Shown here: positions 2,750-45,149 of the stretch, one piece after another
Layout of the letters: each line of letters begins with the position of its first letter
Numbering within the stretch: the stretch's first letter is position 1
NCBI GenBank assembly: GCA_964187785.1
Contig: CAXLNC010001113.1
Span: 1-64,000 of the forward strand
Length of the DNA: 64,000 nt
Reading direction: 5' to 3'
From: Amphiscolops sp. MND2022
Taxonomy: Eukaryota
Made by a program: the position numbers and the translations under genes
Notes under the pieces: generated by a model
The model's database searches: none
Told to the model about the DNA's origin: nothing
The model's input: only the letters and a program-made list of their open reading frames with translations

Positions 2750-3218
2750 GTCCCTCCTAAAGGCCTACGTAAAACCCAGACAAGCGAGACGGAAGGTCAT
2801 TATCTCTAAAGGGGTCTTTTCACTGGAGGAATTTCTGTAATCTCTAAAATCTCCAAATTCTCTAGAATCTCTGGAAAATGGTCAGATTCTCCTTTCTTTT
2901 CTACAGTCCGGGGGCTCTCTAGAATCTCTAAACTCTTTAAATAATCTCTAGAGTCTCTGGAAGATGGACGTTTTTGAAAAGACCCCCTTCTCCCAAAGAC
3001 CCCTTTTCTCAAAGACCAGAGACAAACTAGAGGTCTCGGAAACGGCATCTGCAGAAACGGCGTCTGCAATCGCGTCCGTATCGACGATGTGGGGTTGACA
3101 CTGAATTTCCGTAGCGGCTTTTCCTGTGAAAAGAAATCTGCATTTGCTGGTCTGTCAAGGCTGAGTTTCTGTGTTGGGTCTGGAGATCCGTGTAGCTTCC
3201 AGGATCGAAATTGAATCT

Positions 3219-3349
3219 TGCTAGAGACCATGTTCCCCCAGCTTCACTTCCCAGCTTGACCGACGACAAGCTTGAGCTTGGTGGCCACACCTTGGCTCAA
3301 GCTTCGCTGAGCTTAATGCAAAAGGCAAGCTTGCTTTCTCAGCTTAGCA
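3219..3349 (+). repeat. 5' LTR of AGCT element copy 1
   Basis: TG...CA termini; 126/131 identical to 10532-10662. Confidence 0.9.
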
Positions 3350-3361
3350 TGGTAGCAGAGC
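3350..3361 (+). promoter_or_regulatory. Primer-binding site TGGTAGCAGAGC (3' acceptor end of initiator tRNA-Met)
   Basis: Abuts the LTR; complementary to the ...CUCUGCUACCA end typical of eukaryotic tRNA(iMet); the identical 12-mer follows the 5' LTR of copy 2. Confidence 0.85.
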
Positions 3362-3440
3362 TTGCGTCTAGGCAGCTTCTAGGGTGCACCTTTGCTTTTC
3401 TTTGGTAGCAACCTAGGAGCAGCAGCGGTGAAACTGCCCC

Positions 3441-6400
3441 ATGCAAGCCTTGTGGGCCCCCCACCTCCCCTCTTATGGGAGTGTGGACGCCACCACAAGC
3501 TTGCATCCCTTCCAAAGACAACAACAACCTAGGGAAGAAGAAGAAAGCTTGAGAGTAGCAAGCTTTCAAGCTCAGCAAGAACAACAGGACCCAGGAAAAG
3601 CTGTGAGATCCTCTAGTCTAAGTGACCTTGGGGGAACTCCAGCTTTGTTCCAAGATGCTGTGAGCTCTTCAAGTTTCGGCCTTGGGAGAGCTCCAGCTTT
3701 AGAACACATGCATTCTGAAAGGAGCAGTGTCTCTAACTCAGCTTCTTCTTCGGAAGAGCACATGACTTGCAGGCACATGCTTTCCAGGAAACTTGCCCCA
3801 GTAATCACCCAGCTTAGCATGGCAGTGGTTAGCTTGCAGGAATGCATCAAGACACTGGTGGAGCTTCAAAGTGATAGCTTCAACCAGCAAGATGCACCGG
3901 CAAGGTTTAGGGAGTCTAGCTTAGGTAGCTTGAACTCAACTAGGGCCAACACCAACAGCAACAAAACACAAGAAGAGAGGAGTAGCTTAGAGCTTACTCC
4001 CAGAACTTGCAAAAGCAAGTCTGACGAAACAGGGTCGCACCCTGAGCTTGAGCCAGAGGAGCTTGCGCAGACAGAGGCAGAACAAGAAGCAGAAGAACAA
4101 GAAGAAGGAGAAGAAGCAGCACAGCTTGCTGCTTCACAAACGGGTCCAGCAGAACAACAACAACAACAACAACAACAGCCTCTAGCTTACAAAAGCACAT
4201 GGGAGCACTACTCACAAAGACAGCTTCCAAAACATAAGAGGTGGTGCTTGATATGCTGGAAAAGAGGACACACAACAGAAGCTTGCTAGTACAATGACCA
4301 GCGGCAAAACCAGCAGCACCAAACAGCTTGGGCTGCACCAAGCACAATGCAGCAACAGCCTGCAGGAGCTTTCGCGAAGGAGTTAGGACATAGGTCTTAC
4401 AACTACAGCTTAACCTTAGGAGACCAACCCATGGGTAGCTTGCAGCAATCAGCGCAAGCATCAACACAGCAGCTAGCTTACAAGAGCCCAGAACAAAGCA
4501 CTAAGAACAGCCTAGGCCAACAATCTCAGCACAGCTTAGGAACATCATACAAGAACAGCTTAGGAGAGCATAAGAACAGCCAAAGCAACTGGGCAATCTT
4601 GATAGACGCTGGAGCTGAGATCAGTGTAGCTCCTAGAAGCTTTGCTCCAAACATTCCTCTTAGGGCTTTGGAGCGACCAATGGAGCTTAGGACTGCAACA
4701 GGCGAAGCTATTCCTATCTTTGGTCAGAAGAACATGCATCTTGTGACTGAGAACTTGTGCTTTGAAATCAGCTTTGTGATTGCGAATGTGACCACTCCAA
4801 TTCTTGGAGTAGACACCTCGCTCAGAGAGAACCTTAGCTTAAGGCTAGAAGGTCGCCAGCAACAGCTTGTTCACCAATCAGGACAGTTCACCCAGCTTAA
4901 TCAAGAGGGGCAGCTTCTTTATCTTAGAGCTTTCCTTGTGCAGCTTGGGTCTACTATCCACATGATAGGCAGCTTGCTTGAAGACAGCATCTTGCCAGAG
5001 AACAAGTTGGAGCAGGCAGCTTTAGGAGCAAGAGCAGAACTTAGCAAAAAAGAGGTTCTAGATCAAGGGGGAGCTTATGGCCATAGCTTCTCCCAAGAGA
5101 ACCTTGACAATGAGCACAACTTAGGTAAGAACAAGACAGCTTTAGGAACAACAACTTTGCAGCAATTAGGACAACAAACAGCTTACAAAGACAAGAAGAA
5201 CAAACCTTCTGCAAAGGAATCTTCTCCCCAACAGCTTGGGACGAGAAGAAAGAAGCAGAAAGGTCAGCAACCTGCAGCCAGCGAGCTTAGGACCAACTTG
5301 CGGAAGACTAGGTGCATCAACAAGATAGAGCTTGCTTTGAAGGCTGCAGAAGAGAAAACAAGCTTGGACATAGAAACAAGGTTGGATCTTAGCTTCAGGT
5401 TCTTGCTAACCTTTAGCTTGATCAACCGGTGGCAGATAGCCACAGCAAAAGTAAGCACAGCTTACCCAGAAGGCCCAGCATACCCCATCAACTTGGAGGA
5501 GCTTGGTCTTCGAACATGTGCAGCTGACTCCAACATCTTCTTTGGAGACCAGCTTTTGATCATGCAATTTCAGGGGGAGTTGTTGATAGGAGGAGCCCAG
5601 CTTCAGCAGGAAGGTCTGATCAACCAGCTTTCCGCATTGGACCTCCTACAAGAGACAACCCAGCTTGATCACAACACTCCAGTCATCTTTCAGAACAAGA
5701 TCTTGGAGCACAACAAGCTGGAACACAACATCAGCTTGCACATGCCACTAGCTTTCTACATGCAGCTTTTGTAAAGACACAACTTAGAGCATGAGACAGC
5801 AACAAACTTGCCCCAAGAAAAGCTTGCACCAAAAGCATCCAGACAGAACAAGCAAGTCTTGGATGCAAAGCAGCAAGAGCTTTACAAGAAGACGGTTGGG
5901 CAACTACTCTGGTCAAGAGCTTGCCGACCAGATACAAGCTATGCTGTTGCACAACTCAGCTTGAGCTTGGAAAGCCCAACCGCACATGATCAGGAACAGC
6001 TTTTCTGTTTGCTTAGGTATTTGAAGGGCACCATGCATTATAGCTTGATCTTGCAACCTTGGAGAAAGAAGTCTTTGGAGAAAGCTAGGCACACTGAGCT
6101 TCTAGCTTACTCATCTACTTCTTGGACAAAAGAAGCCAGTCCAACCAGCACAGCTTGCTTGTCTTGCTGGGGTGTTACCTTAGCAACTTGTTGTAGACAA
6201 GCAAGAGGAGCTTGGACACAAGAAGCAGCAGAACTTGACTCAGTAGTGTTGGCTCAACAACTTGCCTTTCACTACCAGAGCTTGGTTCAGGGGATGCAGC
6301 TTGACCTTGCATTGCCTGTTCATCTTCAAGTGTTTTGCTGCAGCTTGTCTTGTGAATTGGTGACTGGGAGACCTTTAGCTTTACAGCTTGGTCTTTCCAG

Positions 6401-7391
6401 AAGAAAGCAGCATGCTCAACTTAGGACTAAGCATGGTCAGCTTAGGCTTAGCAAGGTGCTTCCAGCAAAGAACCTTGCAGAGAGTCTGACCAAGAACCTT
6501 TCCGCCGCTAGCTTTCACAGGTTGCTACCCAAGCTTATGGTGCACACTAGGGCTGTCGATTCGCAAGCTTTGCTTACTAGGCTTAGCCAAGATCAGTTAG
6601 CTTTCTTTTGTAGCAGCTCCTCTAGCTTCTTCATTGGGATGGTAGCTTTGCATCCCAAGATGGCACAGACAAGAACTTTCTCAACAGATGTTTCATTGCA
6701 GCTTCCTAGCTTGACTGAGAGAGGAAAAGAGACAGAGAAGGACCCAGCTTTCCCACAGCTTGCTACAGAACAGCTTCAGAAAAGGATCGTCCCACGAAAG
6801 AGCTTCTTACAGTGCCAACAGCTTTCCAGGAGCAGCTTAGACAGCTTGATCAGACAGAGCTTGAGCGAACAGCTTTGCAGGAACAGCTTAGAGAGCTTGA
6901 GCGAACAGCTTTGCAGGAATATCAGCCAGAGCTTGAGTGAACAGCTTTGCAGATATCACTTACAGAGCTTCAGCGAACAGCTTTGCACGAATAGCTTTCA
7001 GAGCTTGAGCGATCAGCCTTACAAATGTAGCTTTCAGAGTTTCAGCTTCCAGCTTTGCAAGAGCAGCTTAGATGGATTGATCAGACAGCTTGACCTTGTA
7101 CCCAGCTTGAGCTTGGCATCAGAGCTTGGCTCAAGGAGTTACAGAACACAGCTTCAGTCAACCAATTCGGACAACAGCAGCTTCGAGAATAGAGCTTGCA
7201 CCAGCGCAGCTTTGCTTGGCTCAACTCAGGTTGGGCACAAGCAACTTCAGCAGACACAACAGAGCTTACAGCTTACAAAGGTGCAGCTTTGCCAATGCTT
7301 GGCTCAAAGGGGAGTTCAGCACAAAGCTTCCCACAACATAGCTTTGAGCAAGAGATCTTTGAAAAGATCAGCGACAGGAAGATCTTGGTGA
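3441..7391 (+). pseudogene. Gag-protease-pseudoRT-pseudoRNaseH polyprotein interrupted by two in-frame stops
   Basis: ORFs 3441-4289, 4347-5774 and 5808-7391 share one frame, split by TAG (4287-4289) and TAA (5772-5774). CCHC knuckle CLICWKRGHTTEAC, protease LIDAGAEIS, copia RT C-terminal motifs (RPDTSYAV, LRYLKGT), RNase H end NLAESLTK. No integrase and no YVDD. Confidence 0.8.
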
Positions 7392-7594
7392 TCAAGATCT
7401 TCACACACAGCTTCCACAACAACCACCAAAAGCACAACAAGGAGCTTGCAGAGAACCTTGCTTTCAATCCTTTGGTTCATCTTCTTGCTTAGCAACATCC
7501 TGGTTGACAAGCAGCTTGCAGATAAACCTTTTCAGGAAGAACAGCTTCAGCAACAGCTTCAGGATACCATACAGGAGAAGGCGAGAAGCTTGAG

Positions 7595-10102
7595 TTGCAG
7601 GAGCACCATGCAGAGCTTGCTTTCAACTTAGCTTGTAGCCACCAGCTTCAACATAACAACCGGAACAACCCAGCTTTGACAACAGAGCCTTGGGAGAATG
7701 CGCTTGGAATGAACCTTGCAGAGCTAGCAGCTTGGAACATTCAGCTTTTCAACCACAACCCCGACAACATCACCATAGAGCTTGCAAAGACCGAGCTTCA
7801 GCACAAGAAGAAGAAGCAGACCAACATAGCTTCTCAGCAGCTTGGTCAGCAACAACTTAGCTTACAACAACCAGACGCAGCAATACAGCTTCAACAGCTT
7901 TGTCTACAAGATCCAGCTTCAGCAACCAACAGACAGCTTCCAAAGGAATCTTTGTCTTCAACGTGTCTTTCAGACAGCAGCTTGGATCCAGCAGCCAGTC
8001 TCTCAGACAAACTTAGCTTCTCAAAGCAGAGGCTTTCAGATCAGGATCTTCCAGACAACAGCTTTGACAAGAACAAGCAGAAGCAACCCTTAGAGAAGGA
8101 GAATCAAGAGAAGAAGCTTCAGGTTCAACTTCTCTACTACAAGTTCTTTCCAGAGAACCTTGGGCAACAACTTTCAGAACAGCAGCTTCAGGACGGCAAT
8201 CTTGACCAGACAAACTTTCAGCAGCTCAGCTTCGAACAGCCCAGCTTCAGAAAGAAGATCTTGAACAATGAGCTTGCAACAAACCTTGCGAACAACAAGA
8301 CCTTTGAGGAGAACCTTTTCTTTCAGAGCTTCTTCTTTGACAACTTGACCTTCCAGAAGAAAGCTTCAGGCAAGGTAGTCGAGAAGAACTTCTGCAAGAA
8401 GCAGCTTGCAGAGAGCAGCTTTACCCAGCCAGGAAAAGAAGCTTGCACAGAACAACTTCTAACAACTTGCTTTCCAACAGCAAGTGCCAACAAGCAACTT
8501 TACAGCAGCTTGGTTCAGCAGAGTGTCGCCAAAGCAACTTCACATAGAGACCTTTCCCCAGCTTCCTCTCAAAGAGCCACTGGGCAGAAAGAACTTCTTC
8601 ACAGAGAGCTTCCAGAAGCACAGCCTGAAGACAGACCTTCTGCAAGAACACCTTTGCAGAGAACAGCTTGCAGAGAAGAACTTCTACCACACCAGCTTCT
8701 ACAACAACAACTTTCCAGAAGAGACCTTCACCAAGACAGCTTCTCAGACAGCAGCTTGACAGAAGAGAGCTTCAGAACAGCAACTTCTCAGACAGCAGCC
8801 TTGAGAACACGACCTTCAGACAGGCAGCTTCAGAGACAGCAGCTTGGAAACAGAAACTTTCAGAACAGCAGCTTCGAAAAGAACACCTTTGACACAAGCA
8901 GCTTCTCAGAGCACAGCTTTGAGGCCACCACCTTTGACAAGAACACTTTGGCAGCCACCAGCTTCCAAAAGAGCACCTTCAAAGACCAGGCCTTTGCCAA
9001 GGGCAGCTTTGAGAAGAACAGCTCGGAAGACACCAACTTAGCAGAGAACAGCTTCAAAGAGACCAACTTCCAGGAAGAGACCTTCCCAGCAGCGAGCTTT
9101 GAAGCAAGCAGCTTGAGAGCAGAGACCTTCACAGACACCAGCTTTGAAGAAGAGAACTTCTCAGAAAACAACTTTGAGAACAGCCGCTTCACAGACAGCA
9201 ACTTAGACAAGAACAGCTTTGACAAGCACAGCTTCACCAAGAGCAGCTTCAAGAAGAGCAGCCTTGAAAAGAGCAGCTTGGACAGGAGCAACTTACACAG
9301 GAGCAGTTTGGACAAGAGCAGCTTCCCAGAGAGCAGCTTGGACAGGAGCAGCTTCGAAGAGAGCAGCTTTGCCAAGAGCCGCTTTCCGGAGAAGAGCTTC
9401 ACCGAGCACAGCTTTCTACAGCACAACTTCTACAAGAGCCCCTTCGAAGAAAGCAGCTTCGACCACAGCAGTTTCAACCAGAGCAGCTTCGAAGAGAGCA
9501 GCTTCGACCAGAGCAGCTTGGAAGAGAGCAGCTTGAACAGCAGCTTTGAACAGAGCAGCTTGGAGCCGAACAGCTTCGAAGACAGCAGCTCTGAAGCAAG
9601 CAGCTTCAGAAGCACCAGCTTTCCAGAAGACAGCTTGACAGCAGCAGCCAGCTTGGCAGACAGGCGCTTTAAGAGACCAGCTTTGCCAACTGAGCTTGCA
9701 CAGCTTGAGCTTGACAGCCACGCTTTGCACACCTTTCAGCAAAGCAGCGTGGCAGTCGGCAGCTTCAAAGAGAGCAGCTTGAGAACGAGCAGCTTGAGGA
9801 AGAGCAGCTCGACAACGAGCAGCTTTGAAAAGAGCAGCTTCAAAGAGCACAGCTTAGAAGACAACAGCTTGACAAAAGAGCACTTCGACAAACACAGCCT
9901 CGAGAGCAACAGCTTTCAGCAGGACAGCTTTCAGCAAAACAGCTTTAAGCAGGACAGTTTTAAGCAGGACAGCGTTCAGCAAAACAGCTCTAAGCAGGAC
10001 AGCTTTCAGCAAAACAGCTTTAAGCAGGACACCTTTAAGCAGGACAGCTTTCAGCAAAACAGCTTTCAGCAGGACGGACAGCTTTCAGCAGAACAGCTTT
10101 AA
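7595..10102 (+). CDS. Extra 3' ORF with a long x-S/N-F/L-x-x pentapeptide repeat array (function unknown)
   Basis: 835-aa ORF; about 50 consecutive pentads from about 8850. The non-repetitive part shares motifs with 47032-49530 (QLCLQDP, YYKFFPEN, NNELAT). The array continues after a frameshift into ORF 10188-10760. Confidence 0.6.
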   Translation: MQEHHAELAFNLACSHQLQHNNRNNPALTTEPWENALGMNLAELAAWNIQLFNHNPDNITIELAKTELQHKKKKQTNIASQQLGQQQLSLQQPDAAIQLQQLCLQDPASATNRQLPKESLSSTCLSDSSLDPAASLSDKLSFSKQRLSDQDLPDNSFDKNKQKQPLEKENQEKKLQVQLLYYKFFPENLGQQLSEQQLQDGNLDQTNFQQLSFEQPSFRKKILNNELATNLANNKTFEENLFFQSFFFDNLTFQKKASGKVVEKNFCKKQLAESSFTQPGKEACTEQLLTTCFPTASANKQLYSSLVQQSVAKATSHRDLSPASSQRATGQKELLHRELPEAQPEDRPSARTPLQRTACREELLPHQLLQQQLSRRDLHQDSFSDSSLTEESFRTATSQTAALRTRPSDRQLQRQQLGNRNFQNSSFEKNTFDTSSFSEHSFEATTFDKNTLAATSFQKSTFKDQAFAKGSFEKNSSEDTNLAENSFKETNFQEETFPAASFEASSLRAETFTDTSFEEENFSENNFENSRFTDSNLDKNSFDKHSFTKSSFKKSSLEKSSLDRSNLHRSSLDKSSFPESSLDRSSFEESSFAKSRFPEKSFTEHSFLQHNFYKSPFEESSFDHSSFNQSSFEESSFDQSSLEESSLNSSFEQSSLEPNSFEDSSSEASSFRSTSFPEDSLTAAASLADRRFKRPALPTELAQLELDSHALHTFQQSSVAVGSFKESSLRTSSLRKSSSTTSSFEKSSFKEHSLEDNSLTKEHFDKHSLESNSFQQDSFQQNSFKQDSFKQDSVQQNSSKQDSFQQNSFKQDTFKQDSFQQNSFQQDGQLSAEQL

Positions 10103-10521
10103 GCAGGACAGCTTTCAGCAAGACGGCTTTCAGCAGAACAACTTCCAGCCGGACAGCTTTCAGCAGACCAGCTTTCAGCAGAACAGCTTGCAGCAGAACA
10201 GCTTTCAACCAGACAGCTTCAGGCACAGCAGCTTACAAGCAACCAGTTTTCAGCAGAACAGCTTTCAGACCAACAACTTTCCGAGAAGAACTTTGACGCC
10301 TGAGCTTCCAGAGCTTCAGCGCACTGAGCCTACAAAGCTTGAGAAAACAGCTTTGACTACTGAGCTTGCACAGCTTCAGCACAAACCTTTGACGACTGAG
10401 CTTGCACAGCTTGGAGAGCCAACTTTCAGCACTGAGCTTGCAGAGCTTGACAGCGCAACTTTGCAACAAGCGGGGAGCTTTAGCATTCCTTCCTGGACGA
10501 AAGCTTTGGACTGCTTAGTCC

Positions 10522-10531
10522 AGAAGGGGAG
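10522..10531 (+). promoter_or_regulatory. Polypurine tract AGAAGGGGAG
   Basis: Directly precedes the TG of the 3' LTR. Confidence 0.8.
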
Positions 10532-10662
10532 TGCTAGAGACCATGCTCCCCCAGCTTCACTTCCCAGCTTGACCGACGATAAGCTTGAGCTTGGTGGCCA
10601 CACCTTGGCTCAAGCTTCGCTGAGCTTGATGCAAAAGGCAAGCTTGCTTTCTCTCCTTAGCA
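10532..10662 (+). repeat. 3' LTR of AGCT element copy 1
   Basis: Direct repeat of 3219-3349. Confidence 0.9.
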
Positions 10663-11674
10663 AATTTCCATATCGGTTTCGTATCGTCGATATGGGGTTG
10701 ATTGCCGCGACCCTGTTTGCCGACACTGTTTCCAAACAGTTTAAATGGCGATATGTTTAAACCATTTCGTTCTCATAGACGTTTGCTCGGTTGATATTCT
10801 GGTTGCGTGCTTGAGGATTATCACACAAGTTTTAAAGGGAATTCCCTCAGAGAGACGCATCTATGAGAGCGATCTGGTCGGACAAACAAAATTCCTCTCA
10901 TGGGGTGTCTCAAAAATTTAAACGCACCAGACGCCTTAAAATGACCTCAAAAAAACAAAATAACCTCGCGAGGGTATTTTTGTGCTTGTTCTAAAGGGTA
11001 CCTTTGGAGGGTCTTGCAAAAAATAACCTCAGAGATGAAAATAGAAACAAGTTTTGAGGCACAAATATTAGATATTTTCGAAGCCCCTGCGACCATGACC
11101 CCCCGACAAGAAATTTCAAAAACTTTAAATTCTTCAAAAATTCCCTAAAAATACTTAACGTTTACTTTTAGGGAACGAGCGTTTACTTTTGGGGATAATC
11201 GGGGTTTTCGGTTTTTTTTTTAGATTTTTTTCTTTTTTTGTTGCTGGGGGGTTTTCGGACTCCGTGGGTCGGGGGGCCCCGTAGGAATTTTCGAAATAAG
11301 TTTTGAGGCAAAAATAGCCTCAAAGATTCTCAGACAAACCATACGGACCCCTGATCCAAGCCTGCAGGCTAACCAGCCCCAGTTGTTTGTTTATAACTGG
11401 GCTCTCGCCAGCTGTGCTGCTCAAAAGAACATGCACAACACATAAGCAGCAACATCAGACCGGAGCAAACAGATGCTCCGCCTCTTCCCTGTCCTTTACT
11501 TAGTCAAGAAAACGCTTCTGCAGAAATGCGAGGGGACTTTGTCTAGGAGTCTCGGAAACGGGGTCCGCCAAAAAACGGTGTCCGCAATCGATATCCATAT
11601 CGACGATGCGTTACACGAGAGCAGTCCCAGAAATTCAAGGTGATGAAATTTTTCAGAAACCTTGGGAGTGAATT

Positions 11675-32120: not shown

Positions 32121-32630
32121 CAAGATGGGTGCAGTGAAGTCTTTCCAGGGTGGGAACCATATCAATAAGAAGGTACCAGCCCAGTTTGCGCAATCACCGT
32201 TGCCAATTGAAAGCTTCCTCCACATCCAGACTTGGCACACTAGGCATCCTACTTCCGGCCAGGCTTATGCATTGGAGTTCAATGTCAGCTTTGCAGGGGT
32301 GTCAGGCATTGCTTTCAATGTCCCTACCTTGTGCCAGCATCGGTGGAATACCAGTGTGAATTGGTCCCAGCCGACCGCAGATGTTGACTTGCTCGGAATG
32401 TGTGGTCGTCGCCAGGATCTAGAAGCCACACTCCAGGCTATGGGACTTGATCACCGCAAATTGCCTCAGAAGCGCGATCCAGGTTATCGGCATACATTGC
32501 CATCTGATGAGGAAATCCAACAGCAGGCGCATGCCGAGCATATGCGAGCATTGATGTCAGGACAGGCACCGCCAAACTTTGGCTCTCAGGCTTCAAGTTC
32601 ACAGGCACCGCCTCAGTCTTCGAGTGTTTC

Positions 32631-32836
32631 TGTGTTGTCTATATGCAAGAATAGACTGTGCGCAGTGTAGGTCAAGTATGCAGAGCAAGCAAAGCAGATA
32701 TAAGGGCGCTAGATAGATCGCTATGCAGTCTTCCTTTTGCACTCATGCCCTTGGAGTCTTGAGCCAAGTAGGGCGTCGAATGACATCATCATGCTGTCGA
32801 TCAGTAGATCAAGGTTGCAAGCTGCATCCCTTGACA
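32631..32836 (-). repeat. 3' LTR of the copia element
   Basis: 205/206 identical to 45160-45365. Confidence 0.95.
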
Positions 32837-32846
32837 CTCCTCCTTC
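32837..32846 (-). promoter_or_regulatory. Polypurine tract GAAGGAGGAG
   Basis: Directly precedes the 3' LTR on the minus strand. Confidence 0.85.
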
Positions 32847-32979
32847 GATAGCATGCTGTGTCTCTATTCACATCGAAAAGTCAAAACTTGGGCTTCCCTA
32901 CTCACATATCCCAATCTCAGCTGAATTCCACTCGCTTTTTGGCATCGAGAGATCACAACGTAGCCATTGATCTCGTGCT

Positions 32980-35109
32980 CTAGCGCTGTTGCTTCTTCTT
33001 GGCTTCTGCCCATGGATCACTCATGGAACCTGAGGCCATCGAAGGATTCCTGACATATGGGGCTGGTTTGACCTGCACCATTGAAGCTGAGCTTGAGGAC
33101 GCATGTGGAGGTGGAGGAACTGGAGGGGCTGGCTGCAATGGATGTGTCATAGATGGCATCCAATGTGGTTGTGCAAACGTGGAACGCTTTGCCCTCACCA
33201 TTTCTTCAGTCATGCCATCGATCCATTTGTATACCTTCTCCTGCTCGTCCTTGATATGCGTCAGAATGCCATCTGCCCATAGACGACAACACGTGGACTC
33301 ATAAGCAAGCTTCTCGCTATACTTCTGCAACTCCCTGAGGTTCTCAATGGATGCTGTGCTGCGGTTGAGATCCGTAATGGACTCTACTGGTTGAGGAGCT
33401 CCATGTCGTCCATATGAAGGATAGTGTGGACTCTGCATGGTTTTGCAATGACGAATGAACGTCGACAAGGGGCTCGGCATGTGAGCACAGTATGGAATGT
33501 TGAGATCCCATAGATTCGCTGGAATTGGAAAGTCCGGGTTGGGAAGGATGACGTCAGGCTGCATTGGAGCCATGCCTGGAACTGGACCTGAAAAGTCACA
33601 GGGCTGATGCTCCTGAATGGGCTGGCATCCTCCATGAAGTGAGCTAGCTGGAGCCATTCCATGCATCATTGCTGCTGCTGCACATTGAGTTGGTGGTGGC
33701 ACCTCTTGTGGCGGCTGTTCCTTGGAGGCCGGACCATCGACATCATCATGACTAAGATGAATTCCCCATCGATAGTCTGCTGCTCTGCCTTCGGACTTAG
33801 CCTTCTTGTACTCTTGCTTGTACCAATTTGGTTGACCTGGGCCTCCATTGACCTGTGCTAATGGACACTGGAATGGAGCATGTCGGCCTTTGCATAGAGT
33901 ACAGCGATGTTCTTTGAGAGGATTCCTATGCTTCTCAACATGCTTGCATGCAAATCTCGGATGATTGCTCATGTCGCAATATGCACAGTAGATGCGTGGA
34001 TCTTTGCAATTCTTCTCAAGCTTGAGTGAATCCCGGATCCACTTGATGTAGTCATCCTGCTTGTCTGGTGGCAACTGATGGCTCTTCTCTACTGGGCATG
34101 GAATTTCAGACATTGGGAACAAGAAGTCGAGGTTGGTATCGATGACATCGAGAGTACGCCATTCGAGACCTTTCTCTTCTGGATCGGTACGCTGCGAAAT
34201 GTCAACTGGAACAGACTGGCCTCGCTTGGAAGATCCCTTGGACCACTTCTCTGAGCTGGATCCTTCCCATGTCCATGACTTGCTGACGGACTTGGAACCT
34301 TTCTGCTTCTGCCAATCCTTGAAATCCTCAAGTCGACCCATCCATGGCTGTTGCTCATGGAGTCCCAATGCTTCAACCATCGAGGTTTCCACATCACGCA
34401 TGTAGGTAACCCACTCACAATCTTGTTCTGGACAGATCACCATCTGCTTGTGCCTCTCGTTGGGCTTGGCATAGAAGGTATGGCAATCATTCCTTGGAGC
34501 TGGGATCTGCGGAAAGCCATACGTGGATGCAAGTATGGAGTTGAGCTGCTGGATCATGTCTGTGTCATCGCGAAAGGACATAGATGCTTCGAGAGTACAA
34601 TCTCTGGCAACCTTTGAAGCGATGCATGGAGTCAAACTGATCATAGCTCCGCACATGACTGTGCTGGCACAATCCGCAAACGCGCATGCTGGATGAGACT
34701 GGCTCTTGTTGCTCAATTGAATACGAACTAGAAGTGTCGTCTCTTTGCACAACAATGGATTCGCTTTTTCCTGTCTCAATTGATCCGCATATCCTGCTGC
34801 ATATTCCCATTGGTAGCAATATGACCATGTCGTTGGACAATATGTTCTCTGCTTCTCCTCTGCCTTAGTGTCACCACTTGGAAGGATAGTCTTGCTGTAG
34901 GCAATGCCCAACGCATGCATCATGTTCGTAGATTTGAATGCTGCTATCGGTGACTGACTCTGTAGCGCGTCCTTGGCAAACTTGGCAGTGTGCTCATTGT
35001 CGGGGGCAATGTGCCATGGAGGCATACCAAATGTCAATGCATCCCAACATTTGTAGACTGCGGTCATGGGATATGTCCACATGGGTTGAAGTCCTTGAAG
35101 CTTAGACAA
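32980..35109 (-). CDS. Accessory ORF, C-terminal part: two zinc knuckles, Pro-rich region and a predicted coiled coil
   Basis: 709-aa open frame containing CAYCDMSNHPRFAC and CTLCKGRHAPFQC (about 33866-33987); overlaps the upstream ORF in another frame. Confidence 0.7.
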   Translation of the reverse strand: MSKLQGLQPMWTYPMTAVYKCWDALTFGMPPWHIAPDNEHTAKFAKDALQSQSPIAAFKSTNMMHALGIAYSKTILPSGDTKAEEKQRTYCPTTWSYCYQWEYAAGYADQLRQEKANPLLCKETTLLVRIQLSNKSQSHPACAFADCASTVMCGAMISLTPCIASKVARDCTLEASMSFRDDTDMIQQLNSILASTYGFPQIPAPRNDCHTFYAKPNERHKQMVICPEQDCEWVTYMRDVETSMVEALGLHEQQPWMGRLEDFKDWQKQKGSKSVSKSWTWEGSSSEKWSKGSSKRGQSVPVDISQRTDPEEKGLEWRTLDVIDTNLDFLFPMSEIPCPVEKSHQLPPDKQDDYIKWIRDSLKLEKNCKDPRIYCAYCDMSNHPRFACKHVEKHRNPLKEHRCTLCKGRHAPFQCPLAQVNGGPGQPNWYKQEYKKAKSEGRAADYRWGIHLSHDDVDGPASKEQPPQEVPPPTQCAAAAMMHGMAPASSLHGGCQPIQEHQPCDFSGPVPGMAPMQPDVILPNPDFPIPANLWDLNIPYCAHMPSPLSTFIRHCKTMQSPHYPSYGRHGAPQPVESITDLNRSTASIENLRELQKYSEKLAYESTCCRLWADGILTHIKDEQEKVYKWIDGMTEEMVRAKRSTFAQPHWMPSMTHPLQPAPPVPPPPHASSSSASMVQVKPAPYVRNPSMASGSMSDPWAEAKKKQQR

Positions 35110-36551
35110 GATAGGTCATCAACATACGTCTCTGCCATGAATCCCATCACCGGTGTGCCTTCCCAGATCGTAGATGGCTCCTGCCATTGACGACACGCAC
35201 CATAGATCTTGGAATCATCAAACATGAGGATTTGATATCGAGGCACATAGTCTTTGAGTTGAGCTTCCAATATCTGCATCAAGTACTGAAACTTGCTCGC
35301 ATCTTCCCAATCACGACACCATATGACAATCATCATCGGCTGATCCAATAGACTGAACCAATGTGGTGCATTGAGGACCCATGCTGCTGGCTCGGTCATA
35401 TAGATCTTGTGCACGGCATGATTCTTGGTCACAGTGATGACATTGTCAGCTGGGAATAGACCATTGAGCGTGAAGGTAGTCAACTCTGGCACTTGTGCAC
35501 GGTTTGCACGAAGCTCGTCAGGTGATTTGCTCGGACTTGGACCTCCCTGGAGAACATATGCAAGTTGTTCATATAGAGGCTTGGACCAATCAATATCACG
35601 AGGAGACTTGACCCTAAGGTACTTTCCTTCATCGTTCAATCGAGCTTGCCTGTCCTTCTCATAAGAGTTTGACGGCATACACGCAATCTCTGGAGGTGTA
35701 GGCATGTAGGTAGCTGGAGGACCTTTTGCACATGGTCTGCATGGTTGAGGTATCTCAACAGATGCTGAAGCTGCTACATAGACCTCTCCTTCTGCTTGAG
35801 GAGGCTTTGGGAATGCCTTGTGTCGAACCTGCTTGCTCGGTGGGGCTGGCTCTGTTGGTGGCTCCAATGCATGCTTATTGGCACTTGAACTCGTCTCCAT
35901 AGAAGGATGCTTCGGAAGCGCTGACAGTGGAGGACGAGGTGGATGACTTGGAGTCATCGGAGTTTCTGCCAATGGAAGCGCAATGCTTGGAACACCTTTA
36001 GGCCTTGGAGCTGCTGGCGGTGGAGGTTGAACTCCTGAACCAATCCTTGGAGGCTCTGTCTCCTTGATGAACACTGAAGGCATCGGACGTCCACATGTTG
36101 GTGGAGCCTTCTTCACAGTTGGCTGTGAGTAAGAAGTGTTCCTTGGATCATTTTGACGAAGGGCCTCATGGACTCGTGGAAGCTCACGCTGTGATGCAAT
36201 ACCTAGAGGTGGTGGGCCAACTGGAAGTGATGGAGCATTGAGTCCTTTAGCTCGGATCTCGGCTTCCCATTCTCTGATACTGCGTTCGTGTGCTTCATGT
36301 TCAGCTGCTTGTGCCCGCTGCCTGTGCAAGATATCTTGTTGGATAGCCTGATCCATGGTATGGAGAGCACGGGCATCCTTGATTATCTTTGCATACTCTT
36401 CTGTAGTCCATCGACCATCGTTGACTGGAACCTCGAGAACTGCTTCCCTTGGAGATATGGCTGGTTCTGTAGCCACTTCTTCTTGTGCACGAGCTTGAGC
36501 TGCTTCGGCTTCTTCAACTGCATTCGCCATATCATTCATCCAATCAGCCAT
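35064..36551 (-). CDS. Accessory ORF, N-terminal part: helical, Pro-rich and a folded-looking domain
   Basis: 495-aa ATG-initiated ORF between pol and the 3' LTR; probably joined to 32980-35109 across a 1-nt frameshift near 35110. Confidence 0.7.
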   Translation of the reverse strand: MADWMNDMANAVEEAEAAQARAQEEVATEPAISPREAVLEVPVNDGRWTTEEYAKIIKDARALHTMDQAIQQDILHRQRAQAAEHEAHERSIREWEAEIRAKGLNAPSLPVGPPPLGIASQRELPRVHEALRQNDPRNTSYSQPTVKKAPPTCGRPMPSVFIKETEPPRIGSGVQPPPPAAPRPKGVPSIALPLAETPMTPSHPPRPPLSALPKHPSMETSSSANKHALEPPTEPAPPSKQVRHKAFPKPPQAEGEVYVAASASVEIPQPCRPCAKGPPATYMPTPPEIACMPSNSYEKDRQARLNDEGKYLRVKSPRDIDWSKPLYEQLAYVLQGGPSPSKSPDELRANRAQVPELTTFTLNGLFPADNVITVTKNHAVHKIYMTEPAAWVLNAPHWFSLLDQPMMIVIWCRDWEDASKFQYLMQILEAQLKDYVPRYQILMFDDSKIYGACRQWQEPSTIWEGTPVMGFMAETYVDDLSCLSFKDFNPCGHIP

Positions 36552-37388
36552 GATGGAGATAGATGGAAGGTAGGCTTAGATACGCAAGCTTGGAGGTGCT
36601 TATGTGCTGCTAGCAATTCGTGCGTGAAAGCACACACTTGCTGGATCCATAAACGGCTATTCGATCCATAATGAAGCATGGACTGTACAAATGAAAACTG
36701 AAATGGAAAACTGTACCACATCTGTTGGGACAAAGAGATCGTCGAAACAGTTCATCCTCAGCTGCTTGGCAACTCTGATAGAGGGAACATGACATTGGCC
36801 AGCATTGTGACCGCAGAAGCACATGTTCTTCGTGACGATCGATTGCATCAGTGCCATTGTCACCAAACAGACATCAAGACCTATGAACAACCATTCCTGA
36901 CTGCCAGATCTACAATTTGGCACAGACGAAATGGAAGCAACATGGTCTGGACCATACTTGGTCGGTCATGCAACAAATTTCATAGACCATCGATAGAGCA
37001 CAACTTGAACAATTCCCTTGGAAGTGTTCTCTCCGACTCATGCACTCCACAATGACAGGCGGAGGCTGGTCATGAATTGGAACCTTCTCACGATGGAAAC
37101 ATGAATGGGCCATGAGAATGCAGGTCCACACTGTCGGGCGGAACATGCTCTCATGATTCGACCTCAATCTGAACTTCACTCCACAATGTCAGGCGGAGGA
37201 TGTCAGACATTGAGCATAGATTCGAATCACCCAAACATCGTGACAGCAATGTGCTCCTGATGAATTCATATGTACATAGAAGACAATATTCACATGCTCA
37301 AATGAAAACTTGTTCCAAATGAGACAAACGCATATATACATTGAAATAGTTTGAAACCTGGCACACGAGACAATGATGTGTTGGAGGA

Positions 37389-40300
37389 TTAGTCGTCGAT
37401 GAGACATAGGTCTTCCATGATCCTTGGGAGGCGACTTGCACCCAATCCCTTGGTCAGACTGTCAGCGGCCATGTCAGAGGTGGACTGATATGAGAATCGA
37501 ATTCCTCTCCTAGACATTTGATGTAGCCAGAGGGCTTTGACGCTGATGTGACGAGTTCTCCATGCTGTCTCTGATCCATTTCGAACCATATGGAGTGCGG
37601 CTGCATTGTCACTAGAGACTTCGATCTCGCAACATGCATTGGTCATCTCTGCAATTATGATAGAGATGTTCTCTCCTTGCTGAAGAGCTTCACTCGCTGC
37701 AATCAATTCTGCTTCACAAGTGGACTTGGCTACCAGATCCTGTCGACTGGATCGCCATTGAACAAGGTTACCACCCTTTCGAGAACTAGAGGTGATACCA
37801 TGATAGACAACAATTCCTTGCTGGCTCTTCTCCCCTGTCGGTGCAAAGGAGGCATCTCCTAGAACCCATAGCTTTTGCTTGGATGTTGGAGGTACTGGAA
37901 CGTAGCGCAATGCATAGCTCAGTGTATACTGCAAGTACTGACAAATATGTTTGACTCGGACAAAGCATAGATCTGCGTCATGAGTGATCAGGCTTGCTGC
38001 TCGACTCGTTGCCCATGCAATGTCTGGTCTGCTTCGAAGAGCTATCCAATTGAGACAACCTACGATGGCAGGTAAGTTGATAACCACCTGATCAGAATTG
38101 TAGTGTAGTCTTGGATTTGGCTTAGCTGCTGCATCTGCATCAATGATGTCTGCTGCGATGAGCATTTGAAGTGAATCTGAGTACTCTGCTATGGTCTGGT
38201 CGTGTGAGGTGGTGGATGACGGGCTGAATGACTCCTGATTCCCTGGAGTCGTCCGAGTCTTCAATTGGAGACTTGGTTCGAACTTCAGGAGCACCTCAAG
38301 AATGTATTCCATCTGGTTCAATAGAATAGAACCTTCCGGCATGTCGAGTTCTTTGCTTCGAGCGGCATCGACTCTCTCAAGATTCATGCCTAGAAATCGA
38401 AGAATTGGAACACAATCCGAATCAGGACCGAGGTGTTCTGGAGTGCTCGTCTTCCATATACCCTGAACTGCTTTGATCAGCGTCTCATTCAATGTTCGTG
38501 GACCTGCAATCAAGAGGTCATCTACATAGACACCCACATAGCCTAGAATCTTGTGCTGATGAAGTTGAGCTGTCCATTCGTCGCTTCGTAGCTTGTTGTC
38601 GAATGGAGGAATCCCCATCGTGGATGCTTTGGGGCCTTCTGCAATGAACCATAGGCTGGGATGAATGTAGCTTTGAACAAGGTGGACACTTCTGTCATTG
38701 TACACAAACTGAATGTCTTGGAGCTTCTGGTCTCTCTCCTGTTGCCAGAGACGAGGGGCTTCTCTAAGTCCATAAATTGCCTTCTTGACACGCCATACAG
38801 TGTTGGGCTTGACAATATCCATCTTCACTAGAATCGGCGGTGGAGTGATGAGGACAGTATCATCCTCATGGATATCTGCATTGAGGAAAGCACTCGTGAT
38901 ATCCACACTTGACCATGTAGTATCTTTGGAGCATGCTAGACTAAGCATCAATCGCAAGAGTGGAGCATCCAAATTGGTTGTTGTCGTAGAGTGTTCTCCC
39001 CATGTAGCAAAGTTGCCACAAATCACCAATCGACTCTTGTGCTTGTATTCTTCATGGACATCGTTCTCTTCCTGCTGTGACTGTGTCAGGGGCTTGAGGA
39101 CAAAGACCATTTGGCACGGTAGCGGCCATTTCCCTTTCTCCTTCCATGCAACAACAAGAGCTGGGTCGGCATCATCTATAGCCATGTTCTGCAGAAAATT
39201 CTCAATTTCCTTGTAGATCGACATGAGCCATTTCTCACGCATAGCACCTGTAGAAGATGCCACTGTTTTCGGTGAGACTGGTATGCTCTTGGCCTTGATC
39301 ACAGTGTTGGACTTGCCATCATTGGGCTGTGTCCGCTTAGGCTTTCGATCATTTGCTACTGTTGGATGATCAAACTGGACGACTTCACGTCGCTTCTGAG
39401 CTGCAGGTAAATCAGATGGACATGTAACATCTGGGACATCCTTCAGGACTGGAGATTGACTAGAGGCATGCATCATGCGGGCGATAAACATCTGCTTGGA
39501 AGTAACATCAGGCTCGACAGAGTACGGGACTCCGGAATAGATCTTCCCTTGATGATCGAGCCACTTGAACTTTCCCAGTTCATCCTGAATACTTCGCCAT
39601 GGCATGTTCGTCTCTGGTGTATCACGTGATGGACTCGCAGTAAGATGGTATCTGCTTGGATCTAGACGTCTTGGTGCTAGACCTTTGATCACCACACCAT
39701 CCTGCAGAATGCGGGTGGATCCGCTCTGCCATATATCAATGTCTAGTAGGTATCCAACACTTCCTCGATCGTCCAAAGACTTTGCTTGTGCTTTGTCATG
39801 GGATCTCCAAATTCCCACTAGCTGTCCAAATAGAGGATATGTCCAATCTCTTCCTAGAACTCGCTCTCTCATCATGTGTCCAGCAAATCTGCACGCATAT
39901 GACCACCATTCTCTGCCTAGATCTGCTTGTTTGAGCATTCGTCGTACCGTGGTCTTCAACATTCCGACCATTCTCTCAGCAATACCATTAGAAGATGGCT
40001 GATGGGCTGGAGAGTACGATAGAACGATATTCTTCTCCCAGCATAGATCTCGAACTTGTTTGTTTGTGAATTCTCCACCTCCATCTGCCTGGATGCGGGT
40101 AACTCTGGAACCCTTGATTTGGTGCAAGTTGCGATTGTCGCACATGAGAAGTGCTTCCTTCAACGCATTTGACGCACACAAAGCATCTTTCTTGGGCATT
40201 GGGATGAAGAAAGGTAACAACTTCGACACATTGTCAACCTCAATGGTGACTGCTGCAACTAGACAATATTTGTGACCATCTGCTGATGCTTCAAATGCTG

Positions 40301-43300
40301 CTAGATCACAATGCATAATGCCTGGATGTCTGTCTGCATTCTTGCGTCGATGATTGATCTTGCTTCCTGCCTCTTCCATACATACTGGACATGTCGGATC
40401 CTTAGTAAGGTGACCAGACTGATGATGCTCAAGCCATTTTGGGTTGATGGTCTGGGTGTCAGACTCCCATTCTGGAATGCTGTGGATCATCTCCTGCATA
40501 TTGTCACGAAGACTTGTGCTCATGGAGGTTTCATCAGTCTCCATCGATTGCAAGGTGATAACTTGATCTGATTCTGCGAGATACGATGCATTCAAGTTGT
40601 AGTCAGACATGTCATCGAACTGCTCTGGTGTGTACTGGTAGTACTTGGCATCAAGATAGCGCTCGACTATGATGTCGGGCTGGAGCTCTTCAATCTCATC
40701 ATGCACTTGACACTGCATAGACTTCCAATAGTGACATCCGGGACGATGAGGTTGACAAGAAAAGAGAACTTCATGACAAGGTTTGGTCTGTTGCAGTAGA
40801 TTTGGTGGAAATGGTTTGGTGTACATCATGAGTGTAGACCATATAGCATCGGGCGGGATCACCAGCGCTTCGACAATGGCGCGGGTGTCAGGCTCTGCCA
40901 ATGTCGTGGGAGGACATAGATCGCCTTTGGTCAGACCAACTGCAAACTGCTTGGATCCGCCTTGCCGGCGTAGAGAGTCACAGGCCTGTTCAATTTGTGC
41001 CCTGGACGCAATGTATTGTGTTCCGACTGAATTGACATATGGAGTCGTCTCACACATCTTCGCTTTCACACCATTGGATAGATATGAAGTCATCTTCGGA
41101 TCCTGTGCTGCTCTTTCCCAGAACTGCCAATTGAACACTGTGTCGGGATGGGCTTGGTGAACCCATAGAGCTCTCCGAAGTACTTCAAACTGCATTTGAC
41201 TTGCATATGCCATGTTGTTCCTGATCTCGAATTGAGTCATCGTTCGCCACTTGCCTTTATCTTTGCATTGCATGACTGCTGTCCCATTCTCCCATACAAA
41301 CTTCGTATCCAATAGATTGGTTAGTCTGCCCAATGGAAGTAACGGGTGAGCTCTCTCTTGTGCATAGACCTCATTTCTCCAACATTTGGCCTTTTCCTTT
41401 CCCACAGCCAGATTGACCGTAACTTCGAATGACCTTGCTCCCTTTGGTAGCATATGTCCTGGCAATAGAACATGTGTAGCACCGCTATCTAGAAGGGCGT
41501 AGGCCGGGTCTCTGACTTGTGATCTGGAGAAACATAGATCTGGTTCATCGCATCCTGAGTCCATATCCAAATCTGCTTGGTCAGGGATAGTAGCCTGACT
41601 CAGCGCGGTGTGTGCTTGACACATGGACTTCTGCACCGGGAACCACATCTCGCCAAACCATGACTTGTCTAGACTGTCACATGAATCGCTGCTGTCGAAG
41701 TACAATGTGAAGGTCTTCATAGTCTTTGCATCATGACCATAGAGAAAGATTGGTCTCGTGATAGACAGTGACCATTTACCTGGCCTGAACACTGGTAGCT
41801 TCTTCTGAGGTTCTGCTACAGTGCATATCATATAGTCAGCATCATTCCATGTAGAATGTCTCCATGTCAGCTTCGACTTGGTGCTCATCATAGCAAATAG
41901 AAAATCATTTGTCATGCAGGAACGTGCCTCTGGTTTGGTCTTGGGTTGGGATCGGTCATTCTTCGTCGGTGAAGACTGTGCTGGCCGTGGAGCAATAGAC
42001 TTCGGCGTGGTCTTCCCCTTTGACTTCCCTTTTGACCTAGATCCTTTCCCTTTGCCTTTCTTTCCTTTCTGGGCCTCATACTCTTCAATCTCGCTTGGAT
42101 CATCCTGCCATTCTATCTCTGCCCAATCACCCACAGCCTCTTCCCATTCTGCCTGCTTTGCTTTAGGCTTCACTGGGCGAGTACACTGCGAGGTTGGATG
42201 ACGAGTGGATCCGCAGATCGCGCATCTCCCTGGCTGTCGCCTTGGATGATACTTCGGACAGTGATGACCTTGAGAGCAACCATTTGATTTCCAGTAGTCA
42301 TCGCATGGGGGTCTCCATTGAGACGGTGAGCCTTTGCCATTCTTCTGCTTGCCTTTTCCTTTGGCAGGCACTTTCCCCTTGCTCGCACTAACATACTCAT
42401 CATACATCGAGTGCTTGACTGAAGTACTGGAACCATTCACAATCTGGGTAATCTTGTCTTGTTCCTCATGGAGTCGAAGTTCTATGAGGAATTCTGCAAG
42501 CATCGCATAGACTCTGTCGAGAGTAAGACTAGATTCTCGCAACTGATGCTTCAAATAGAGACTATCCCAAATGTTGCCCACTGTGCGATAATATTGAGTA
42601 ATGCCGCTGAGGACTTCTTGCACGAATGTTATGATAGTCCTTGGATGTACATGCTGTCCTGTCTTCATGCACAGATTGAGTCTGTGCTGCATTTCTTCAA
42701 GCCAGACACACCCTTGATCCAAAGTAGAGGGAGTGACCTTAGGTGGCGTCAAGAGCTCGCGTTGCATAGTGACCTCGTTGATATCTTGGGGCAAGATGAG
42801 CTGCTTCATCACATACCATGCTATGAGTTCTGCTGTGCAATATCCATGTCTCATGCAAGCATCTGCAATGGATCTCGGAATTGCATCGAGTAGCTCTGTG
42901 CGGAGAACGCTCTCAACCGCATTACTTGCTTGTGGAATATGCTTCCTGTCACCTAAGATATATGCAGGCTCTAGACTTGCTCTTTGAGAAGGAGTGCTTT
43001 GAAGCCATCGATCATGTCTTGCTCGCGCATGATCTAAAATCTCTTCGAGCCAGTACTTCTGTGCGTCACCTCTCCATGTGGCTATAGCAAATGTACATCG
43101 ATCATACCATGATTCTAACAACTGTCTCATCTCCAATATGCTGCACGCCTTGTAGTTGGACGGTAGCATGAGCTTCGGCAATGCCTTTCTTGACCTGTCC
43201 AATGGAGCCCATGGATCAGAAGATCTCGGTGGTTGCACAATGCCTGGAGGTGTAGGTGGAGTGGACCCTGGAGCTCCTGATCCTCCTCCTGTCTGTTGGG

Positions 43301-44675: not shown

Positions 44676-45066
44676 GACATAGCACTTCTTCGGCTTCAGT
44701 CACTACCCTAGATTTCCAATCTTTAGCTTCACTGCTGAGTAGACGCATATGGGCTAGTAGTTCTTCTTCTTGCATGAAGTGACCGTCTCTCTGGGCTTTG
44801 ACTTGCTCAATTTGCGCATCCCTTAGAGATAGCTGAGCTCGTAGCCAAGCAACTTCATCAGTGCGAGACGGCATAGTAGTTCTCAATGCTACTTGATGTG
44901 CAAGATGCTCTTGGTGAGACCTGCCCATAGAGGCTCGTTGAGCAACTGCTTGTAGGCATCCATCTTGTGCATCGATTAGACTGCTCATCCAGGTAGACAT
45001 GTGCTCATGGACCCCGCGGATGGCCGGCATCAAGTCTATACCTTGGACATGTGGAACCATTGACAT
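44605..45066 (-). CDS. Probable true N-terminus of Gag, separated by a 1-nt frameshift
   Basis: The frame is open from the LTR through the PBS; first ATG at 45064-45066; the coiled-coil sequence EEVLCR continues as ESAQMAQ in the main ORF if one G near 44675 is removed. Confidence 0.55.
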   Translation of the reverse strand: MSMVPHVQGIDLMPAIRGVHEHMSTWMSSLIDAQDGCLQAVAQRASMGRSHQEHLAHQVALRTTMPSRTDEVAWLRAQLSLRDAQIEQVKAQRDGHFMQEEELLAHMRLLSSEAKDWKSRVVTEAEEVLCRGKCPDGTKCYRSTRGHGSTFQS

Positions 45067-45149
45067 AGTAGGTTGAAGTCGCGGAACCAACTGATCTTCT
45101 CTTCTGGGGCGTTTAGGCACCAACTGCCTCTCCTGCTCTTCCACTTGAC

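Follow-up and report, generated by a model that had tools for sequence, protein, structure and literature searches.

Non-autonomous retrotransposons with long terminal repeats (LTRs) are usually viewed as deletion debris that keeps the signals needed in cis and, at most, Gag. LARD and TRIM elements have no long reading frame, TR-GAG elements encode only Gag, and all are mobilised in trans. In the mouse, the deleted derivatives IAP I-delta-1 and ETn/MusD need full-length relatives and are the more active partners. Here we describe a family, referred to as N-type, three copies of which lie in a 64,000-nucleotide stretch of DNA (positions 1 to 64,000, forward strand, of contig CAXLNC010001113.1 in the Amphiscolops sp. 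MND2022 assembly GCA_964187785.1), hereafter the window. Like LARD, TRIM and TR-GAG elements, N-type copies feature LTRs, a primer-binding site (PBS) and a polypurine tract (PPT) without a working reverse transcriptase (RT) or integrase. In contrast to them, they keep a frame of up to about 2400 codons with a protease and pseudo-enzyme domains. N-type is neither LARD nor TRIM, because its frames are long and constrained (908 to 2416 residues), and it is not TR-GAG, because Gag is its least recognisable part. IAP I-delta-1 and ETn/MusD differ as young variants nearly identical to their helpers, whereas N-type is an old radiation with selected dead domains. N-type is probably a trans-mobilised, non-autonomous offshoot of one Ty1/copia lineage, in which a dead RT-ribonuclease H (RNase H) module is kept as a pseudoenzyme for the spread of the family itself.

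In wheat, RLG_Cereba and RLG_Quinta, as well as Sabrina and WHAM, are pairs of autonomous and non-autonomous elements with identical PBS, LTR termini and PPT (PMC11302176). As in N-type, the frame of the derivative has stayed open, its numbers equal or exceed those of the helper, and it has a single origin and has persisted for long (PMC11302176). However, these are plant Ty3/gypsy elements, and the derivative codes for GAG plus a domain whose function is unknown, with no RT or RNase H (PMC11302176). N-type, in contrast, belongs to Ty1/copia and combines a degenerate gag with a constrained protease and dead RT/RNase H shells; unlike the known pairs, it has radiated deeply while its cis signals were held fixed. 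Non-catalytic RT and RNase H domains serving as scaffolds or nucleic-acid holders are known from the p51 subunit of HIV-1 RT, the connection domain of retroviruses (a degenerate RNase H) and the spliceosomal protein Prp8. These act inside an active enzyme or a host machine, whereas the dead module is the sole RT/RNase H of the N-type element, and any partner would be encoded by another element.

Ty1-copia elements are also known from the coral symbiont Symbiodinium microadriaticum, in which the heat-activated SmTCL1-4 have recently expanded (PMC5776459). They are copia elements of a dinoflagellate, the probable kind of source organism of the window, but each of the four is reported to carry RT, integrase and RNase H, and the term "non-autonomous" is not mentioned (PMC5776459). 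No non-autonomous LTR family with a selected dead RT was found in the literature searched. In N-type, measurable selection has preserved the folded shells of two dead enzymes during a deep radiation, and the helper alongside it can be named. The family is a tangible example, amenable to testing, of transposon-transposon parasitism that involves a pseudoenzyme. As a natural experiment, it may also reveal which of the non-catalytic surfaces of copia RT and RNase H matter.

Repeat finding revealed three LTR pairs that bound elements in the window, and two of them delimit N-type copies 1 and 2. The features of the three window copies are as follows.

3219-10662, plus strand: copy 1, whole element (repeat finding)
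3214-3218, plus strand: copy 1, left half of the target-site duplication (TSD), AATCT; the right half, AATTT, is at 10663-10667 (4/5 bases match)
3219-3349, plus strand: copy 1, 5' LTR, 131 nt, TGCTAGAG...GCTTAGCA, with TTGGCTCAAG inside at 3292-3301
3350-3361, plus strand: copy 1, PBS TGGTAGCAGAGC
3441-4289, plus strand: copy 1, N-terminal gag-derived frame, 282 residues, of low complexity, with a CCHC knuckle at its end
4347-5363, plus strand: copy 1, aspartic protease (Pfam match) and a Lys-rich linker in the place of the integrase
5364-5774, plus strand: copy 1, RT remnant, running from the palm helix through motif C (FQGE, 5568-5579) to motifs D/E (alignment)
5775-5777, plus strand: copy 1, in-frame TAA breaking the pol-like frame; another in-frame stop is located beyond the CCHC knuckle, past 4289
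5808-6680, plus strand: copy 1, RT thumb/connection (VGQLLW..CRPD) and RNase H-like fold (AYSSTSW; AELDS kept)
7595-10102, plus strand: copy 1, C-terminal tail, 835 residues, with pentapeptide repeats (PF13599, E 6e-21), out of the pol frame
10522-10531, plus strand: copy 1, PPT AGAAGGGGAG
10532-10662, plus strand: copy 1, 3' LTR, 96% identical to the 5' LTR (5 mismatches)
47030-54347, minus strand: copy 2, whole element (repeat finding)
54221-54347, minus strand: copy 2, 5' LTR, 127 nt, TGCTAAGAG...GCTTAGCA; the PBS at 54209-54220 is the same as in copy 1
50635-53361, minus strand: copy 2, 908-residue frame with protease (DTGA at 52801-52812), Lys-rich linker, RT remnant, connection and RNase H-like fold
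47032-49530, minus strand: copy 2, tail frame, 832 residues, with pentapeptide repeats (PF13599, E 2e-20); it shares 44% identity with the tail of copy 1
47030-47156, minus strand: copy 2, 3' LTR, 126/127 identical to the 5' LTR; PPT AAGGGGGAG adjoins it at 47157-47165
45567-46590, plus strand: copy 3, a fragment with linker and RT remnant (HKNN at 46411-46422), running into an assembly gap

The internal region of copy 1 has the same order of parts as copy 2 and corresponds to one reading frame with two in-frame stops; the proteins of the two copies are only 41-48% identical. In the RT remnant of copy 1, motif B is deleted and no catalytic Asp is left. In copy 2, the motif C position reads HKSS (51886-51897) and the RNase H-like fold carries AFSSSS. 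The protease active site of copy 1 is DAGA (4605-4616) and reads DTGA in the other 14 aligned copies (14/15). The N-type protease, which is 50% identical to that of the autonomous sister lineage (referred to as A-type), is kept with its catalytic motif and is active-looking.

The 3' LTR of copy 2 is followed by a PBS-like string, TGGTAGCCGATTTTC (47015-47029, minus strand), beyond which lies an assembly gap, and the flanks of the copy (GCCGC and TGGTA) show no matching target duplication. The 3' end of copy 2 may represent a tandem or recombinant arrangement. N-type copies are found in clusters: contigs of 17-76 kb (C782, C1608, C150) bear two to four each and the window bears three, which suggests nested insertion or a preferred target region.

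About 40 N-type copies are present in the assembly. A protein search yielded 54 matches with 37-100% identity, many of them without a stop and all on small contigs. The LTRs have TG...CA ends and, in L031 and copy 1, are flanked by 5-bp TSDs, and the PBS and PPT adjoin the LTRs. The assembly contains 44 sites of a 20-mer composed of the last 8 LTR bases and the PBS, GCTTAGCATGGTAGCAGAGC, and a reversed control contains none; the 20-mer is exact even in copies whose proteins are just 37-40% identical. The best-preserved copies have their entire internal region in a single frame of about 2400 codons, the longest frames spanning 2405-2416 residues. N-type moved recently, because one copy (L031) has identical LTRs (128/128), a perfect 5-bp TSD (AAGCC/AAGCC) and a single 2405-codon frame from PBS to PPT. 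Its PPT is GAGGGGGAG. The family is also represented in the contigs of four public runs from four studies, by thousands of distinct short contigs with 85-100% likeness, in which depth peaks over the protease and the LTR. Compared with this assembly, the native genome must therefore harbour a far larger N-type family.

The gag-derived leader of the N-type protein is of low complexity, with poly-Asn runs (window 3441-4289; L031:7255-8694), and the CCHC knuckle, the sole part that matches the A-type gag, is kept only in the sublineage of copy 1. The N-terminal region was considered as a normal Gag and rejected, given the lack of a Pfam match and a likeness to the A-type gag restricted to the knuckle and to one sublineage. 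The C-terminal tail of about 1250 residues, which contains pentapeptide repeats and hydrophobic stretches, is collinear among copies (L031:1480-5211, L032, L033, L035 and L036). A tblastn comparison of the tail with the A-type helper detected no similarity.

In Pfam searches, the window copies and 10 long frames from other copies matched only the aspartic protease and pentapeptide repeats. Neither these sequences nor the 120 database relatives listed gave a match to RVT, rve or RNase H. Annotation pipelines based on Pfam see nothing else in frames of 1000-2400 residues and will label them wrongly as host genes when applied to assemblies of dinoflagellates or holobionts. The origin of the module is revealed by its fold and by profile comparisons. 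An AlphaFold2 model based on a family alignment of 52 sequences (35 invariant and 82 nearly invariant columns) has a pLDDT of 75.9 and a pTM of 0.78. The best Foldseek matches in Swiss-Prot are the RT-RNase H ends of RE2, RE1, TNT1, Ty4, copia and Ty1 (E 1e-18 to 1e-15, TM by query 0.62-0.67, about 380-410 of 461 residues aligned), and among PDB structures the model matches the RTs of Moloney murine leukaemia virus, foamy virus, cauliflower mosaic virus and HIV. A profile search of PDB by sequence gave no match. The family profile retrieved 20,832 proteins at E <= 1e-3, and the distant matches that were checked (E 1e-22 to 1e-31) are genuine RVT_2 copia proteins. Profile-to-profile alignment (hhalign) of N-type with 23 live relatives gave a probability of 100% and an E of 1.1e-51. 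N-type is a Ty1/copia (Pseudoviridae) lineage by descent.

In the 23 live relatives, D83 (motif A), D166 and D167 (YVDD), and D348, E389 and D477 (RNase H) are invariant. The catalytic residues are lost in all 16 aligned N-type copies. Motif A has no catalytic Asp and no acidic residue in its place. The YVDD column reads HKSS, HKRD, DQTC, CKHE, FQGE, HENH, CADC, QEGS and the like, with Asp-Asp in none. The N-terminal fingers are absent, and about 40-47 residues including YGLxxAP (motif B) are deleted. In the RNase H-like fold, the first Asp is replaced by Ser (DSDW is now SSSS or SSTSW), the third carboxylate is lost (TDS is now TSS or deleted) and the fourth is variable, so that only the Glu of DEDD is kept. 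Beside these dead sites, the structural motifs LSLRILL, GDELV, LLIGG, CRPD, PT, LGLSR and NLA are conserved. Since the dead-site columns vary and the neighbouring motifs do not, the catalytic positions are free and the scaffold is held. The integrase is missing too: there is no rve match, and in a tblastn comparison of the N-type polyprotein with A-type DNA only the protease and RT-RNase H align. Without integrase, RT motifs and DEDD, N-type is, as judged from its sequence, not an autonomous Ty1/copia element.

Much of this had been anticipated by the original prediction, made from the window alone. The positions given for the substitutes of YVDD (FQGE at 5568-5579, HKSS at 51886-51897 and HKNN at 46411-46422) are exact in every case. 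The absence of YGLxxAP and of the integrase, and the loss of the first and third RNase H Asp motifs, are borne out by the alignments, which together with the Pfam searches also support the view that the family is non-autonomous and that both domains are catalytically dead. The claim that RT C-terminal and RNase H structure stays recognisable in divergent copies agrees with the conservation of LLIGG, CRPD and other motifs and with the match of the model to Ty1/copia RT-RNase H (best E 1e-18). The 908-residue frame of copy 2 was found at 50635-53361 on the minus strand, and the recent movement deduced from its LTRs, one base apart (126/127), is reinforced by the identical LTRs of L031.

Selection was analysed with one-ratio codon models (IQ-TREE, GY+F3X4) fitted to dead-clade copies only, using 16 N-type copies for the pol-like regions and 5 to 8 for the N-terminal and tail regions; 4 A-type copies were analysed for comparison. 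The ratios of nonsynonymous to synonymous rates (omega, or dN/dS) are the following.

Protease: omega 0.34, significantly below 1
RNase H-like fold: omega 0.46, significantly below 1
Connection: omega 0.51, significantly below 1
RT remnant: omega 0.58, significantly below 1
Linker: omega 0.72, significantly below 1
RT plus RNase H together: omega 0.52, twice the log-likelihood difference 194, p 4e-44 against omega = 1
C-terminal tail, about 1250 residues (5 copies, internal control): omega 0.92, p 0.18
Segment immediately preceding the protease (8 copies): omega 0.79, p 0.2
Whole N-terminal region (6 copies): omega 0.61, p 1.5e-9
Live A-type RT-RNase H (4 copies): omega 0.088

For each of the first five regions, p is at most 3e-5. 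Pairwise Nei-Gojobori estimates gave a dN/dS of 0.32-0.63, with a dS of 0.2-0.5 in most of the nearer pairs. All omega estimates come from the crown group of N-type, so they refer to evolution later than the catalytic loss. The dead module is clearly under purifying selection at the residue level, stronger than that on any other part except the protease and about six times weaker than that on the live A-type enzyme. Having lost catalysis, kept its fold and evolved with omega below 1 after the loss, the module is a pseudoenzyme. As the shell of a dead enzyme is under selection, it probably has another job. The original prediction had supposed that the dead domains are selected, and the values of 0.46-0.58 obtained here agree with it. 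No N-type member with YVDD or integrase was found, and 11 of the 16 single-frame alignable copies are stop-free over 630-910 aligned codons.

The prediction had also pointed to a helper with matching LTR ends and PBS, and such a lineage, A-type, was found; its PPT is shared as well. Searching the assembly with the nearest database RT identified a locus (L044) with an uninterrupted integrase-RT-RNase H frame that features DISSAFL, YGLKTSP, YVDD, DSDWAG, AEAELYA, TDSSSG and NPADVLTK. L044 also shows a family-specific likeness to the dead copies, in HLSLRILLILSL and, after RNase H, in LHKLLPKLGVMTRAVDS; SSFFIGM, which resembles the dead copies too, is found in the tail of a related copy (L046). 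A-type RT sequences occur at 79-100% identity on eight contigs (C405, C869, C1228, C1279, C311, C1052, C1716 and C440). On five of these (C311, C440, C869, C1228 and C1279) they lie downstream of a site of the shared 20-mer, among the 44. The distance from the 20-mer to the RT is 3.7-3.9 kb in four contigs and 2.4 kb in C311, compared with about 2 kb in the dead copies; the 3.7-3.9 kb gap is wider because A-type has the integrase and the RT fingers. N-type sites outnumber A-type sites in the assembly by about 5 to 1.

The A-type LTRs were seen in two contigs (L050 and L051) of a public metagenome assembly that contains an N-type protein as well. As in N-type, the LTR starts with TGCTAAG and ends with GCTTAGCA, and is followed by the PBS TGGTAGCAGAGC; in L050, the 3' LTR is preceded by the PPT AAGGGGGAG, also shared with N-type. 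N-type and A-type diverge in the interior of the LTR and in its length, which is 127-131 nt for N-type and about 80-85 nt for A-type. In a maximum-likelihood tree of the shared region, all 16 dead copies form one clade with A-type as its sister (bootstrap 100 for both), and other autonomous lineages lie further out. The relative with intact YVDD and integrase is accordingly a separate sister lineage outside the N-type clade, and the dead family therefore arose once, from an ancestor shared with A-type. N-type has diversified since then and comprises at least three deep sublineages, which have long branches and 37-75% protein identity; the A-type branch is short. A-type occurs in the same contig set as N-type and is the likely helper because LTR termini, PBS and PPT are shared. 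By these signals and by co-occurrence, N-type is likely a non-autonomous partner of A-type that would be mobilised by it.

Two other elements were considered as helpers and rejected. The nearest database relative (P0232 / L043) has a PBS that is off by one base and different LTR ends, and falls outside the clade formed by N-type and A-type. An autonomous copia within the window (32630-45365) differs in both LTR ends and PBS and is the most distant branch of the tree.

In summary, a single ancestor lost the integrase, the RT fingers, motif B, all RT catalytic Asp residues and three of the four RNase H carboxylates, and its descendants radiated, keeping the LTR termini, tRNA primer site and PPT of A-type letter for letter. 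We propose that N-type RNA is reverse-transcribed and integrated in trans by A-type enzymes recognising the common cis signals, and that the dead module is kept as a pseudoenzyme with a non-catalytic job in the spread of N-type itself. Most likely, the protease-pseudoRT-pseudoRNase H protein would hold nucleic acid (RNA or primer) or dock onto the helper Gag-Pol through protease or RT dimer contacts, much as inactive p51 lends support to HIV RT, and N-type RNA would thereby be brought into the particles of the helper. We favour a role as adaptor or scaffold, considering the active-looking, helper-like protease, the low-complexity leader with no recognisable capsid domain and the dead RT/RNase H scaffolds known elsewhere. 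A more specific form, in which a transposon-encoded adaptor binds its own RNA during translation, docks on the helper Gag-Pol through protease or RT dimer contacts and gets this RNA, in place of that of the helper, loaded into the particles, is put forward tentatively, since we consider it less likely than not. If the adaptor reading is true, a dead polymerase was turned into a hijacking tool and preserved while parasite and helper coexisted for long.

Several points weigh against this proposal. Trans-mobilisation is deduced from shared signals and co-occurrence. Within the assembly, A-type was seen by coordinates and as two loci without LTRs, its LTRs coming from the metagenome assembly. No primer tRNA was identified, as the window contains no tRNA and no tRNA 3'-end pattern match was obtained in the assembly. 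The N-terminal region, with no Pfam match and no recognisable capsid domain, leaves it in doubt whether N-type has a particle protein of its own. None of the public runs holding the element is on record as RNA, and contigs from these runs cannot show expression. An omega near 0.5 is a tree-wide average over constrained sites, free sites and neutral decay after insertion, and does not single out a surface. A heterodimer prediction for the N-type module with A-type RT-RNase H, which scored 0.07 against a mark of 0.34, is listed here as well, and weighs neither way.

The alternative that survives best, although we regard it as unlikely, is that the N-type protein is a dominant-negative decoy that poisons the RT, protease or particles of the helper, either as a brake on copy number or as a side effect of parasitism. 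A comparable brake is the truncated Gag p22 of yeast Ty1. A folded, dead RT/RNase H under constraint fits this alternative equally well, and a protease 50% identical to that of the helper, together with the 5 to 1 excess of N-type sites, is in line with it. However, selection in transposon lineages favours copies that spread rather than copies that restrain a helper, N-type insertions are recent, so the helper is not shut down, and binding to the helper is unsupported.

Alternatively, the frame might be open only for translational read-through, for example in order to reach the tail or to avoid RNA decay, with the identity of the residues being irrelevant. The single frame of about 2400 codons in the best copies would be expected, and the tail behaves in this manner: it is open over about 1250 codons in five copies at an omega of 0.92, and its frame is thus kept without constraint at the residue level. 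Avoidance of stops alone would leave omega near 1 in the module as well. Because the frame-only tail has an omega near 1 and the module does not (0.46-0.58), selection on the frame alone is disfavoured for the module; the invariant and nearly invariant columns of the 52 sequences and the confident copia-like fold also speak against it. We consider this explanation distinctly improbable.

Still less probable is that N-type copies are ordinary decaying copies of an autonomous element, conserved by ancestry without selection. In favour of this, the frame of copy 1 is interrupted by two stops, its protease site reads DAGA and its LTRs differ at 5 positions, and frameshifts occur in about a third of N-type loci. 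In contrast, the deletions are common to all copies, which form one clade with deep internal branches, and omega is significantly below 1. Moreover, assuming that 4% of single-base changes create stops, about 10-20 stops per 800 neutral codons are estimated at a dS of 0.2-0.5, but 11 of 16 copies have none. That the RT is divergent but active through unconventional residues is scarcely credible: the fold is kept, but motif B and part of the fingers are deleted, and the motif A and C positions, invariant in live relatives, carry no conserved acidic residue and differ between copies.

The window DNA probably derives from a dinoflagellate cobiont co-assembled with the animal. N-type and A-type copies were found only on contigs of 10-76 kb (C109-C1887); the chromosome-scale contigs C1-C13 carry copia families of their own, which share just 31-35% identity with the queries. 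The sequence (T)TGGCTCAAG, which we take to be the 3' end of the dinoflagellate spliced leader, is found in the LTRs of N-type, of A-type and of the unrelated copia (three or four families). Exact (T)TGGCTCAAG 10-mers number 5 in the window, compared with 0.5 expected, and occur at the following positions.

3292-3301, 10605-10614, 32758-32767 and 45287-45296: 10-mers in window LTRs
7126-7135: fifth window 10-mer, inside copy 1
About 7953-7962 in L050 and about 5996-6005 in L043: (T)TGGCTCAAG in LTRs outside the window

Coral and marine metagenomes are among the public runs that contain family sequence. Moreover, all database relatives stem from ENA assemblies, and the five of their contigs that were inspected resemble long-read contigs and belong to three such assemblies. 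Given the probable cobiont origin, the copy numbers reported here are lower bounds.

The third LTR pair of the window bounds the unrelated element that was rejected as a helper.

32630-45365, minus strand: autonomous copia with a 2428-residue frame containing integrase, YVDD and DEDD, and identical LTRs of 207 nt

The LTRs of this copia have the ends TGTCAAGG...CAACACA. The PBS, GGTTATGAGC, is located immediately inward of the 5' LTR (45149-45158, minus strand) and is the complement of the anticodon loop of tRNA-Met. By analogy with Drosophila copia, in which half-tRNA priming is known, this suggests that the window copia may be primed by a half-tRNA, unlike the 3'-end priming of N-type and A-type elements.

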